From: Scyliorhinus canicula
Taxonomy: Eukaryota
Direction: 5' to 3'
Assembly: GCF_902713615.1 (NCBI RefSeq)
Contig: NC_052156.1
Coordinates: 127,596,407 to 127,660,406, forward strand
DNA length: 64,000 nucleotides
In this document: piece by piece, positions 39,458 to 56,107 of the stretch
Layout of the letters: every line of letters starts with the position of its first letter
Numbering within the stretch: the stretch's first letter is position 1
Notes under the pieces: generated by a model
Told to the model about the DNA's origin: nothing
The model's database searches: none
What the model saw: only the letters and a program-made list of their open reading frames with translations
Translations under genes and position numbers: made by a program

Positions 39458-39696
39458 TTAATGAATAATATGACATAGTTCTTCAGGACTGACATTTCCT
39501 CCAGTTATTATGACCACAACAGTCTTTCCTTCAAGATTGATCTTCTCTCCGACAATAGCGGCAAAAGCAGCTGCTCCTGAGGGTTCCACAACCAAGCCAA
39601 TCTTGTATAGCATGGAAACGGCAGCTTTTATTTCATCATCTGAAACCAATAGGATTTCCTTCACATGTTGTTTGCAAATCTGGAATGAATTTGAAC
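39458..39696 (-). CDS. Serine racemase-like dehydratase last exon
   Basis: acaacag|GT TCA...; VSDDEI...VVEPSGAAAFAA...ITGGNVS...HIIH*; minus-strand AATAAA at 39417-39422. Confidence 0.93.
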
Positions 39697-42600
39697 CTGT
39701 TGTAAAATAAAATAAATTCTGAATGACTGCTAGATAAAATATTTCTACTAGTTTTAGTTTCTGGAGTCTTCGCTCTTGTATCTTTATGTTTTGATACCAT
39801 TTTATTTTTTTTCCCTTTCAATAGTTGCACTCTTCACTTTTACAATTCTGTTGCATTTAAACTACTTGCTTGTTGCAATTCTGATTTTGTAAATACTTAA
39901 TCAAAAACTACAGCTGGATATTTTCTGATTCACTTACCTGCAAATGGTGGAGCAAGTCCTGTGGCAATGCTCTTTGCATCCATAAACACTGGCTTATTTT
40001 CACAGAAACTTCTGTACATGGTGCAAGCTGATGATAGAGCAACATCGTGAAAGTGGTGCTTTCAAAATTCTTTTAACTGTTAAAATTAGACTCTGCTGAG
40101 ATAAAGTTTGTCACCTTCTTTTGGTTCCACTCCATATATATTTGTGGTTGTGCAGCCAGATAGTTTAAAGGCAGCAGCCACTCCTGCAAGCAAACCACCA
40201 CCTCCACAACAAACTGTCACCACATCAGGATTTGGAATTTCCTCCAGAATCTCCAGGCCAATGCTAATAAAATACAAAATGAGACAATCTGGGTTTAGAA
40301 TAGTTTGTTTTAATATTTTTTGAAGTAAAATGTTTTGCACAGTGGGAGCACTGGGGTCTCTCAGTGCTAGGGGCCTGTGTTTGATTCTGACTGTGGGGAG
40401 ACTGCCTGGGTGGAGTTTGCATATACTCCTAGTGTCTGTGGGGTTTTTTATTTGCCAGGGGCTCTGGTTTCCTCTCTCAGTGCAAGATTGTGTAAATTCA
40501 CCATGCTAAATTTCCCTTTTGGTGTCCAAAGATGTGGGGTTACAGGGAGCGGGCCTGGGTAGAATGTTCTTTCGGAAGGTCCGTGCAGACTCTATGCACT
40601 AAATGTGTGCTGCAGAATGAGATGTTACTATTAGAAGAATGTTTGTTGAATGCTTATTTATAGAGGGAATTAGCAGACCTTTAGAAAGCTGGTACCAAGT
40701 CATACTTGGTGAGATTAATTTCAAGACTTGGGAGCAGATTTAGGCCACTCAGTCCATCAAGTCTGCTCTATCGTTCAATCATGGCTGATCATTTTCTCAT
40801 CTCTGTTCTCCTGTCTTCTCCCCTGACCCCCTTATTAATCAAGAACATTTCTATCTCTGTATCTATCTCTGTCTTAAAGACACTCATTGGTGGCTTCTGC
40901 AGCAAAGCGTTCCACTGAGTCACCACCCTTTGGCTGAAGACATTTCTCCTGATCTGTTTTAAAGGATTCTCCCTTTAGTCTGTGGTTGAGCCCTCTGGTT
41001 CTAGTTTTTCCTACAAGTGGAAACATCCTTTCCACGTCCACTCTACCCAGGCCTTGCAGTATCCTTCTAAACCCCAACGGGTACAGACCAGAGTCCTCAA
41101 CTGATCCTCGTGACAAGCTCTTCATTCCAGGGATTATTCTTATAAGCCTCCTCTGGACCCTTTCCAAGGCTACCACATGCTTCCTTGGATACAGGGCTCA
41201 CAATACTCTGGATGGTATTGTTCTATTAAATATTCCTTTTCATTTATGAATAGTCAGGATTATTTCTCAACACAGCTAAGACATACGATGCACATTTTGC
41301 TAAATGATGGAATAATTATCCTGTATGTGTGTTAACTTTGAGACCACGTGTGAAGGTCAATCCTTCTCCCAATTGAGGAAGGAGTACTAGACCCAACATA
41401 ATCAATTATTCTATGGGGTTGGAAGAGGAGTGAATAAGACATCTTGGCCTCAGCGATGCAGCAAATGTGTTTTTTTTTCAATCCCCAGGTTGGAATTTGA
41501 TTTTTACCTTCCATGGCCAGCAATCAAATCTATGTCATCAAAAGGATGCAAGAAAATCATTTTTTGATCCTTAACAAGTTGTTCCACAGTAGGCATTAAT
41601 GACTTGGCTGGCATCTGCTCAACGTCTACACCATAACTCTAGGTTGTAATATAAAAATGCACAGTATTAATATTGCTGATTTATAATACACACCATAAAG
41701 AATAACTCCGAGCCTCAATTAGTGTGCGACATGTTCCTCGACTAATGTTATAAAAATAGTAATACTTACAAAGTATACTTTTACTCTTCAAAAGCTGAGA
41801 ACCTAACAGGTTAGTAATGCTGCATTTCATGTTGATTATAATTTTGAGGTGGTTTAATGACATCACTATAAGTTTGAATGTGATGATGTTTGTTTAATAC
41901 AAGTTCAAATACACGCAGACAAAACAGGTTACCCAGAAGAACATGAAAATGTTTTACCAATTTGTAACTCTTAATACATTTGTATCTTTAAAAAGATGGG
42001 GGAATAAGTGTTAATCCACCACCACGTTTCATGACATTGCATCAATTTTTGCACTTTGAAAAAGTGCAATGGTACCAGAAACCAAGACCGAGATTTTGTG
42101 CTCTAGTCCACAGTGGGTGTGAATGGCGACGGAAGCGTGCATATCACAAGAGGTGCTGAACTGAACCTGCCAGAGGCATTCGGACGAGTGCATCGCTCAG
42201 GGGGAAGAGGGTCATGGCTGGGGACAGCCCTGGCAAAGGCAGTGCTGATTGGGGGTAGTCTAGTTTTATTTCTATGGTATTGGGCCGCCCTTTTAAAAAC
42301 AGCATCCTGATGTTTTAAAACTCAAGTTGATGGCTGGGTCTGCCCTGCCAGCCATTGAGGGACCGGCCCCTTCACTTTTTTCTGACTATCAGCTGAGTGA
42401 TCAGCTGCCGTTGGGCCTGGCGTTTTCCCCCTCCAGCTGCACCATTCTCCTGGAAACTAGGAAAAATCTGCTCTTAAATTGGAAGCAAAATAGTTGAGGT
42501 GCTTGAAATCAGAAATAGAAACAAAGTGCTGGAAATACTCCGGTCTGGCAGCATCTGTGGAGAGAGGTAGAGAGTTATAGGGCTGGATTCTTCGCACCCC

Positions 42601-54600: not shown

Positions 54601-56107
54601 ATCGTAACCTCTCCTGAGCTCTGTCTTTTCGTGATTTTTTGTAATCCTAAGCAACTTCTTGGTTCCCTGACTTTCCCTTCCCCTCAAATTTCTTTCATTC
54701 TCACTCCACAGTATAAATATTTCCCACTTTCTCCGTCGGTTAGCTTTGTCAAAGAGTCATCGGACTCGAAACATTAGCTCTTTTCTCTCCCTACAGATGC
54801 TGCCAGACTTGCTGAGATTTTCCCTTTCGTCTTAGAGCTACATGTCTCTACCTCTTTATGTACCTTGCTTTCTCTAACTATTTAGCCATGAAATCTTGCA
54901 GCATGAATCTTGCATTAGGTTTCCTGAATTGAAGTGATAGATATGATTGTCTTCATGAGCTGATGTCGCCATAGCAATGCTCTTCCCTTTATTTCCAGCA
55001 GAGCAACCTTTTCCTTTCCTTGCTTAATTCACATCAAAGATGTAGATTCACTTCAAATTTATAATTTACTAAAGTTAACCATGTATATTCATGCTTACTG
55101 CAATTAGGGCGCTCTTTGATGCTGGTGCTGTGTCCACCATTAGTACTTTTCCTCTATGTCCAAAGTGCTTTGAAGCATAAGCAAAAGCTTTTCCATAATT
55201 TCCTGCTGACATTGTAATGAAAGGCCCACTTTCTTTTCTAGAAAATTGATTAGCTACTCCTCTGATCTTGAATGAGCCTGCAAAATAAAATTCAAAATTT
55301 ATGTAGTATTAGCACAACAAGGGGCAGCACGGTAGCATAGTGGTTAGCATCAATGCTTCACAGCTCCAGGGTCCCAGGTTCGATTCCCGGCTGGGTCACT
55401 GTCTGTGTGGAGTCTGCACGTCCTCCCGCTGTGTGCGTGGGTTTCCTCCGGGTGCTCCGGTTTCCTCCCACAGTCCAAAGATGTGCGGGTTAGGTGGATT
55501 GGCCATGCTAAATTGCCCGTAGTGTCCTAAAAAAAGTAAGGTTCGGGGGAGTTGTTGGGTTACGGGTATAGGGTGGATACGTGAGTTTGAGTAGGGTGAT
55601 CATTGCTCGGCACAACATCGAGGGCCGACGGGCCTGTTTGTGCTGTACTGTTCTAAAAATAAAAAAGGCCCAAAAACTGAGTGCCACGTTGAATACTTCA
55701 AAATTGGCTCCCTTTTTCTGAGCAACTTTATAATAGTCTGATGGTCCGTTGTAGCCCCCTTATGTCCTCTTCGCAATTTACTCTTCTTTGAGTTTTCAGC
55801 AAATTTTGCAACCACACCTTCGGTCCCTTCATGCAGAAACATATCTCCCTTTATGTGACTTTAAAAAAAAAAATCAGCTTACTGTAGTGCAGTGCATGGA
55901 ATAAACACAACGCAAGCCTTCGCAGTACTAACCTGTTGTCTGCATGTTTTCCAGTTTCAGGTACAGATTACAGTTGATTTTCATTGGGATTGTCCCATGA
56001 GGCAGATGAATCAGAGGAGTTCTAATAACTTGCAAACTGCTCTGTTGTACTACCTCCCTGGCTACTTGCAACATCTGCAGGCTCAGCGATGTTTGTACTT
56101 CTTCCAT
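39458..56107 (-). CDS. PLP-dependent fold-type II serine/threonine dehydratase (serine racemase-like), 320 aa
   Basis: Exons 56107-55933, 55277-55099, 41638-41508, 40263-40115, 40027-39938, 39696-39458 (963 nt, all GT-AG, open frame). Motifs RTPL, LKLENMQTTGSFKIRG (PLP lysine), TMSAGNYG, HPFDD..LIAGHGSIGLE, CCGGGGL (phosphate loop), GVEP, VEPSGAA, TGGN. Confidence 0.93.
39938..40027 (-). CDS. Serine racemase-like dehydratase coding exon 5
   Basis: catcag|CT TGC...GCA G|gtaagt; ACTMYRSF...SIATGLAPPFA. Confidence 0.9.
40115..40263 (-). CDS. Serine racemase-like dehydratase coding exon 4
   Basis: IGLEILEEIPNPDVVTVCCGGGGLLAG...GVEPKE; canonical splice sites. Confidence 0.93.
40730..41210 (-). 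mobile_element. CR1 3' fragment
   Basis: ALERVQRRL...RTRG in ORF 40874..41176. Confidence 0.8.
41508..41638 (-). CDS. Serine racemase-like dehydratase coding exon 3
   Basis: cctag|AGT TAT GGT...GGA AG|gtaaaa; HPFDDIDLIAGHG. Confidence 0.92.
42690..48252 (-). mobile_element. L1-clade LINE, 5'-truncated in ORF1, with frameshifted ORF2 (EN, RT, C-terminal)
   Basis: ORF1 47708..48298 (NRSRRKNLRILGL...PARLWVT); ORF2 pieces with PGPDG, YRPISLLN, QTGF, LDAEKAFDRV, YADD, HMFWACP; HE1 SINE inserted at 43045-43355. Confidence 0.93.
48300..49520 (+). mobile_element. Decayed Gypsy (Gmr1-like) gag relic
   Basis: Hand translation gives GAKKADIIELI, LPKFNED, LEKV...LKW, GKAIDVYS, YEGVK and a degenerate knuckle H*NKPVHVKMTCWKL. 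Confidence 0.55.
49660..49910 (+). mobile_element. HE1-type V-SINE
   Basis: V core. Confidence 0.75.
50084..51440 (+). mobile_element. Penelope-like element (RT thumb, GIY-YIG endonuclease); pLTR end displaced to 54738-54830
   Basis: ORF 50086..51135 contains NLVYCIRCSQCGLLYIGETKRRLRDRFAEH...VACHFN...LGTLQLSGLN. Confidence 0.9.
51441..51630 (+). mobile_element. Short tRNA-derived SINE
   Basis: Same family as 25767-25960. Confidence 0.85.
51633..54500 (-). mobile_element. CR1 LINE, near-complete ORF2 with frameshifts
   Basis: APE fragments (GITETWL, MGDFN, SSDH) and a 578-aa RT ORF 52062..53798 (YRPISLTS, KAFDKVPH, QGSVLGP, KFADD); tandem-repeat 3' tail. Confidence 0.93.
55099..55277 (-). 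CDS. Serine racemase-like dehydratase coding exon 2 (PLP lysine)
   Basis: ttgcag|GC TCA TTC AAG ATC AGA GGA...ATT GCA|gtaagc; GSFKIRG, SAGNYG. Confidence 0.93.
55321..55655 (+). mobile_element. HE1 SINE, young full-length copy
   Basis: Head GGGGCAGCACGGTAGCATAGTGGTTAGC, V core, and a tail matching the CR1 3' end at 60748-60804. Confidence 0.9.
55933..56107 (-). CDS. Serine racemase-like dehydratase coding exon 1
   Basis: MEEVQ...RTPLI...LYLKLENMQTT G|gttagt. Confidence 0.88.

Follow-up and report, generated by a model that had tools for sequence, protein, structure and literature searches.

The gene examined here lies on the minus strand of a 64,000-nucleotide stretch of the Scyliorhinus canicula genome (contig NC_052156.1, positions 127,596,407 to 127,660,406; hereafter the window) and encodes a pyridoxal 5'-phosphate (PLP) enzyme of an old eukaryotic and animal subfamily that is separate from serine racemase (SR; gene SRR) and from the bacterial enzymes TdcB and IlvA and apparently also from SDS/SDSL. 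The locus is an intact, transcribed, single-copy gene and is not an orthologue of SRR. From its sequence, the product is predicted, with a probability of roughly 0.6, to be an ammonia-lyase that acts on L-Ser, L-Thr, or a similar neutral beta-hydroxy-L-amino acid and has no racemase activity.

The gene was rebuilt from the window as six exons between positions 39458 and 56107, with a coding sequence of 963 nt that specifies 320 amino acids and a stop codon. An earlier reading of the letters without database searches (the sequence-only reading) had described a clean 320-aa, 6-exon frame across a 13.5-kb transposon-filled intron, and its coordinates, length, and exon count were reproduced exactly. 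All five introns were of the GT..AG type, with lengths of 655, 13460, 1244, 87, and 241 nt. In the order of transcription, the parts of the gene, including its largest intron, were as follows.

55933..56107, minus strand: exon 1, with the ATG at 56107, encoding residues 1-58 and one further base; donor gttagt; verified for frame and splice phase, and in agreement with the RefSeq isoform X2 protein.
55099..55277, minus strand: exon 2, with the PLP lysine in SFK62IRG and the substrate loop S82-A83-G84-N85-Y86; acceptor ttttgcag, donor gtaagc; transcript contigs enter its last 30 bases from exon 3.
41639..55098, minus strand: intron 2, 13,460 bp, with retrotransposon remnants (long interspersed nuclear element [LINE] and Penelope-like) recognized by profile matches to open reading frames (ORFs).
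41508..41638, minus strand: exon 3, with HPFDD at 149-153; acceptor cctag, donor gtaaaa; joint 40263/41508 present in X1, X2, and X3 contigs and in 3 raw RNA reads.
40115..40263, minus strand: exon 4, with the phosphate-binding loop G182-G185 and E208-P209; joint 40027/40115 present in X2 and X3 contigs.
39938..40027, minus strand: exon 5, with ACT214MY and SIATGLAPPFAG; joint 39696/39938 present in X1, X2, and X3 contigs.
39458..39696, minus strand: exon 6, with E279-P-S-G, T306-G-G-N, and the stop codon TAA at 39458-39460; top match of the whole-genome search.

Expression was demonstrated by transcript contigs from three studies, which carried the joints 39696/39938, 40027/40115, and 40263/41508 and passed from 41638 straight to the end of exon 2, while the three raw reads that crossed the 1244-nt intron came from a run recorded as RNA. 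Introns 2 to 5 were therefore confirmed by contigs spanning the joints, and intron 1 has the RefSeq model, the open frame, and its splice signals in its favor. The spliced 320-aa protein was 100% identical to residues 28-347 of the Scyliorhinus canicula RefSeq entry "L-threonine dehydratase catabolic TdcB isoform X2." The gene is thus already annotated, by similarity only, a point on which the sequence-only reading needs correcting. In a six-frame search of the 4.2-Gb assembly, all six exons were matched on contig C11 only. A processed pseudogene or an extra copy was rejected, since the matches were confined to that contig.

Two differences among the transcripts were observed. The 87 nt of intron 4 (40028-40114), divisible by three but interrupted by stop codons, were retained in an X1 contig, which reflects either intron retention or RNA not yet processed. 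At window position 40222, in exon 4, an A/G difference was seen in one X1 contig and in 1/4 raw reads of X21. By hand count, it falls on the second base of codon 175 and replaces a Val of the PDVV segment by Ala, and it is probably a polymorphism.

The predicted reaction was derived from the residues of the active site, and L-Thr/L-Ser deamination in particular from the SAGN loop and the structural similarity to TdcB. In the shark protein, the relevant motifs were SFKIRG at 60-65, SAGNYG at 82-87 (within TMSAGNYG at 80-87), EPKEACT at 208-214, SIATGL at 231-236, and TGGN at 306-309. Their conservation was counted across 154 aligned family members, among which teleosts predominated. S60, F61, K62, S82, A83, G84, N85, G182-G184, E208, and E279 were invariant in all 154, G185 was found in 153/154 and T214 in 145/154, and position 132 was occupied by L, M, V, or I throughout (154/154). 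Nearly invariant were Tyr86 (Phe in three members), A212-C213-T214-M215, and A233-x-G-L-A-P-P, giving a family signature of TMSAGN(Y/F)G ... EPxGACTMY ... GLAPP(F/Y)AG. The four motifs quoted in the sequence-only reading (TMSAGNYG, EPKEACT, SIATGL, and TGGN) were all present in the shark protein, but TGGN proved to be a shark-lineage variant, with SGGN, as in SRR, in 136/154 members. Likewise, EPKEACT was replaced by EPEGACT in most of the family.

The residues of SR were mapped onto the shark protein by HMMER alignments, at the level of sequence only, to the S. pombe (1v71) and Dictyostelium (6lut) enzymes. Ser-to-Ala replacement of the re-face base abolishes racemization in human, yeast, and Dictyostelium SR, while the human Ser-to-Ala enzyme still eliminates L-serine (PMC6424897). 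Both S82 of S. pombe SR and the second Ser of Dictyostelium HSSGN aligned with Ala83, and the alanine expected in place of the racemase re-face serine was found in all 154 aligned members. E210 and D216 of SR bind the metal (PMC6424897). The metal-site Glu was kept as E208, and the second ligand, Asp214/216, aligned with Thr214, which bears out the altered metal site that had been proposed. Of the SR contacts to ATP, K52 of S. pombe SR, which touches the gamma-phosphate, corresponded to Thr57, and N25 corresponded to Ile28 when the alignment was extended three residues beyond its start; the contacts Y119 and N311 were kept as Y120 and N309. The relay residue Q87 of S. pombe SR was replaced by Lys88. 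R133 of S. pombe SR, the Arg that positions charged substrates, aligned with Leu132; in SR, R135 positions such substrates and steers the preference for hydroxyaspartate and serine-O-sulfate (PMC6424897). An HPF triplet has been reported for serine-recognizing SerR and SDH homologues (PMC11850409), and H149-P150-F151 of the shark protein agrees with it.

The fold was that of the wider enzyme class. The protein matched Pfam PALP (PF00291) with 231 bits against a cut-off of 35, with the Schiff-base K62 and the glycine loop G182-G185 in place, and an AlphaFold2 model built from 56 homologues reached a predicted local distance difference test score of 94.6 and a predicted template modeling (TM) score of 0.93. 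The nearest solved structures were those of TdcB (2gn0/2gn1; TM 0.91, root mean square deviation 1.8 Å, 29% identity), followed by IlvA catalytic domains and by yeast, human, and Dictyostelium SR (TM 0.84-0.89; human and yeast 0.87-0.89). Among Swiss-Prot models, the nearest was phenylserine dehydratase Q10725 of Ralstonia pickettii (TM 0.92, 32% identity). In sequence, the protein was about equally distant (~30% identity) from TdcB, IlvA, SR, and phenylserine dehydratase, and exon-by-exon searches of PDB and NCBIfam gave weak generic matches only.

Compared with known enzymes, the shark protein shares with Salmonella and E. coli TdcB a single-domain fold-type II PLP architecture of ~320-330 aa without an ACT regulatory domain, the S-A-G-N loop with Ala on the re face, and a PFDD-type loop. 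It differs from TdcB in sequence (29-34% identity), in having Tyr86 in place of His, in the ACTMY and GLAPPFAG segments specific to its own family, in its position outside the TD plus SerR half of the tree, and in being the product of an intron-bearing animal gene. With SR (human 3l6b, S. pombe 1v71, Dictyostelium 6lut), it has in common the fold, the length, ~29-33% identity, the PLP Lys, the Gly loop, the metal-site Glu, Tyr120, Asn309, and the HPF triplet; the re-face Ser, the metal Asp, N25/K52, and the Arg of SR are replaced by Ala, Thr, Ile/Thr, and Leu, respectively. The likeness to Q10725, a bacterial protein absent from the tree, was seen in structure, its identity to the shark protein being no higher than that of TdcB. 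SDS and SDSL (1p5j, 1pwe, 2rkb) are vertebrate PLP L-Ser/L-Thr ammonia-lyases with, by comparison, an S-(A/G)-G-N loop, but they matched the shark sequence much more weakly (E 1e-25 to 1e-19), and a separate SDS-like gene is present in the shark.

The relation to SRR was examined within the same genome. Besides the window gene, a whole-genome Pfam PALP search found five loci, on contigs C31, C1, C7, C19, and C22. The C31 locus is the true shark SRR, with exons that read IRGALNAV...VVTHSSGNHGQAL and AEPENADDCYRSK...WPIIRDLVDDVFTV and with the motifs HSSGNHGQAL and EPENADDCY; the C1 gene was SDS-like and the C7 and C19 genes were CBS-like. A quick tree and a careful maximum-likelihood tree were built, and these held one animal SRR only, the partial shark SRR (213 aa from four exons), because no named SRRs were retrieved: a homologue search with a profile that included the four shark SRR exons returned only Bacteroidota relatives and no named vertebrate SRR. 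In the careful tree, the window protein fell within a vertebrate clade (support 100/99) whose order followed the species tree, from sharks, salamanders, bichir, sturgeon, gar, and bowfin to teleosts. This clade was nested in a wider family that included amphioxus, Lingula, Lymnaea, Hydra, a marine-protist transcript, and metagenomic eukaryote-like contigs. The shark SRR stood in the opposite part of the tree, in an SSGNH-type clade (100/96) beside SAGNH threonine ammonia-lyases. When SRR and the vertebrate family were forced into one clade, the log-likelihood fell by 54.7, and the arrangement was rejected by the approximately unbiased (AU) test (p = 8e-6). The proposal that the gene is distinct from SRR and not its orthologue was thus upheld by the location of SRR on C31 as well as by the trees. 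The placement of shark SDS is unsure, since its partial sequence lay on a very long branch.

Two of the other PALP loci showed features of their own. The shark SRR (C31:3440123-3452245) keeps HSSGNHG but has LCGGNVD in place of the SGGN of human SRR, so that a Cys occupies the pyridine-N1 position, as it does in serine dehydratase. A search of C31:3442880-3450400, an interval with a 500-N run at 3442920-3443419, did not reveal its middle exons. At C22:22948485-22955108, a PALP-fold gene carried the degenerate motifs SVKERG, SSDNNFSK (for S-x-G-N-H), and GGDCN (for GGGG). Its best PDB matches were threonine deaminases, at ~35-39 bits over 80 aa, and it may be a divergent or noncatalytic threonine-dehydratase-like paralogue.

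As an ammonia-lyase, the window protein would hold PLP as an internal aldimine through Lys62. The substrate would displace Lys62, which, as the sole catalytic base, would then remove the alpha-proton on the si face; the beta-hydroxyl would depart, and the enamine would be released and hydrolyze to the 2-oxo acid and ammonia. No D-amino acid would be expected, because the re-face position is Ala83, and activation by Mg-ATP would not be expected, because the SR-type Mg2+ site and the contacts to the gamma-phosphate of ATP are not conserved. Several points weigh against this assignment. No paper was found that assays or characterizes any member of the family, fish orthologues included, and the two activities, racemase and dehydratase, are reported to interconvert readily within the superfamily, without regard to phylogeny (PMC11850409). 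Ala83 is also compatible with beta-replacement, with D-substrates, and with larger hydroxy-amino acids, phenylserine among them. Two features, the GLAPPFAG segment and the Tyr at position 86 where His is usual, are peculiar to the family, and the mapping of R135 to L132 adjoins indels. Finally, the protein scored below every NCBIfam equivalog or subfamily cut-off, the best being NF006094 with 215 against 331 bits.

The protein could instead be a lyase or beta-replacement enzyme for another substrate (phenylserine-like, 3-hydroxyaspartate, a D-hydroxy amino acid, or a cysteine or selenocysteine derivative) and no general Ser/Thr dehydratase, the main rival reading, possible but doubtful. Phenylserine dehydratase is the best structural neighbor in Swiss-Prot and is followed by several RefSeq names, but the identity of only 32% is about equal to that with TdcB. 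Tyr86, the hydrophobic residue at 132, and GLAPP(F/Y)AG suggest that the pocket differs from those of TdcB and SR, and the NCBIfam scores for threo-3-hydroxyaspartate lyase, BhcB, and EutB were near that of TdcB; against these stand the HPF triplet, which agrees with serine-recognizing homologues, and, for hydroxyaspartate, the Arg that binds the beta-carboxylate in SR and hydroxyaspartate lyases, which maps to Leu and thereby disfavors that substrate.

It is considerably less probable that the protein is a functional racemase or epimerase in which another residue or water serves as the re-face acid; the serine racemase labels would then be correct in essence. Several orthologues are annotated as serine racemase or srr, the fold is close to that of SR, and function in the superfamily is labile, but Ala83 is present in all 154 aligned members, the same replacement abolishes racemization in three SRs (PMC6424897), and the same genome holds a true SRR with Ser that is separated from the window gene by the trees and the AU test. 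A pseudoenzyme with a PLP fold, whether catalytically inactive or regulatory, or an artefact of annotation is a very improbable explanation. The absence of a match to a curated equivalog model would be in keeping with it, but conservation extends to the PLP lysine, the substrate loop, the glycine loop, and the Ser/Thr that contacts N1, two distantly related sharks share 89% identity, spliced transcripts occur in three studies, and the fold model is confident. The preferred reading of the protein remains that of a probable ammonia-lyase for L-Ser, L-Thr, or a similar substrate.

Members of the family were found well beyond sharks. Shark orthologues showed 83-92% identity to the catshark protein; sturgeon, gar, bowfin, bichir, and >100 teleosts had orthologues at 59-66% identity, and the salamanders Pleurodeles and Ambystoma had orthologues at 61-62% (434-444 bits). 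More distant members occurred in amphioxus, Lingula, Lymnaea, and Hydra, in a marine-protist transcript, and in metagenomic eukaryote-like contigs. The suggestion of a separate vertebrate branch was therefore correct as to the separation from SRR, but the branch is not vertebrate specific, since it has amphioxus, brachiopod, mollusc, cnidarian, and protist members. All five intron positions were common to the shark and amphioxus genes. Together with the agreement of the vertebrate clade with the species tree, this indicates an old, vertically inherited gene, and horizontal transfer from bacteria was rejected on the same two grounds.

No frog, reptile, bird, or mammal was present among the 120 best database hits, which ranged from 710 down to 418 bits. 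An amniote protein as conserved as those of the salamanders would have appeared among these hits, which provides good but indirect evidence that the family was lost in amniotes. The absence from frogs and amniotes is indicated by these 120 hits and by the human fold-type II PLP set, in which no such gene is known. The sequence-only reading had considered the gene apparently absent in human, which agrees with the lack of amniote hits, but tetrapods as a whole are not without it, and because salamanders keep the gene, the loss would be later than the fish-tetrapod split.

Two distant members differed in gene structure. In the amphioxus orthologue, the exon that corresponds to shark residues 119-162 was present twice, side by side (locus positions 11340-11465 and 11890-12024). 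The two copies may be mutually exclusive, which would fit the two RefSeq isoforms of that gene. An intronless member, 53% identical to the shark protein, was found on a 150-kb ENA contig near an LSM gene, with neighbors mostly without Pfam hits. The contig is probably from a microbial eukaryote, and the family thus extends beyond animals.

The gene had been placed between GTSE1 and TRMU, which are direct neighbors in human, and both flanks were matched by Pfam profiles. In the window, the following neighboring features were located.

11868..12569, plus strand: GTSE1 exon, matching PF15259 GTSE1_N with 104 bits against a cut-off of 27.
61483..61719, plus strand: first coding exon of TRMU, matching PF03054 with 29.4 bits against a cut-off of 20.6; the match covers ~61570-61662 in an open frame.
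60910..60993, minus strand: alternative first exon of RefSeq isoform X2, located by tblastn with isoform residues 1-30.

Of the 27 residues by which isoform X2 is longer at its N terminus, the first 24 are encoded by the exon at ~60910-60993; the extension is missing from the 320-aa Heterodontus protein. This exon and TRMU exon 1 are ~500 bp apart and oppositely oriented, and this head-to-head spacing suggests that the alternative first exon and TRMU share a divergent promoter region. In stickleback, the orthologue was also head-to-head with TRMU, at a distance of 1.2 kb. The linkage to TRMU was shown for shark and stickleback only; no TRMU neighbor was found at the amphioxus locus.

The remaining features of the gene region were repeats. 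Copies of short interspersed nuclear elements (SINEs) were visible in the sequence of intron 2, in addition to the following matches.

52065-53798 and 44867-45958: two RVT_1 ORFs, which scored 114 and 102 bits.
53844-54263: endonuclease ORF, matching Exo_endo_phos_2.
50086-51132, plus strand: weak GIY-YIG (Penelope-like) match, below the Pfam cut-off.

In intron 3, the words of window positions 40940-41170 occurred at a depth in the thousands in transcript assemblies, and this segment probably represents an interspersed repeat, a SINE or another type, that is expressed.

The names attached to the family in databases were inconsistent. Mislabeling as serine racemase had been predicted and was indeed observed: the Chiloscyllium orthologue is labeled "serine racemase isoform X1," that of Hydra "serine racemase," and that of amphioxus "SRR," the Oreochromis and Larimichthys proteins appear as "uncharacterized protein srr," and those of Bagarius and Scleropages as "putative serine racemase." Other orthologues are named TdcB, IlvA, L-threonine ammonia-lyase, or, in many fishes, phenylserine dehydratase, the last of these stemming from Q10725. 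The RefSeq name TdcB is a best-hit label rather than a statement of membership, because the protein scored 198.4 bits with the TdcB equivalog NF006389, against a cut-off of 453.

The gene therefore represents an uncharacterized subfamily of a well-known enzyme class, and no principle is changed by it, as fold, cofactor chemistry, and Ser-versus-Ala logic were already established. A more speculative view, which we consider unlikely, is that some fish annotations under srr may carry the Ala83 family and not true SRR, and that the loss in amniotes may mark a metabolic change involving an anamniote-specific substrate. If it were true that teleosts are without a genuine SRR, or that studies of D-serine in fish rely on the Ala83 gene, the source of D-serine would need to be re-examined. 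The family itself is an orphan branch of PLP amino-acid lyases, strongly conserved from cnidarians to salamanders and apparently absent from amniotes, and it would add one entry to the enzymes lost on the way to mammals. Fixing its function would settle the name across hundreds of genomes and would stop the confusion with SRR in work on D-serine in fish and invertebrates.

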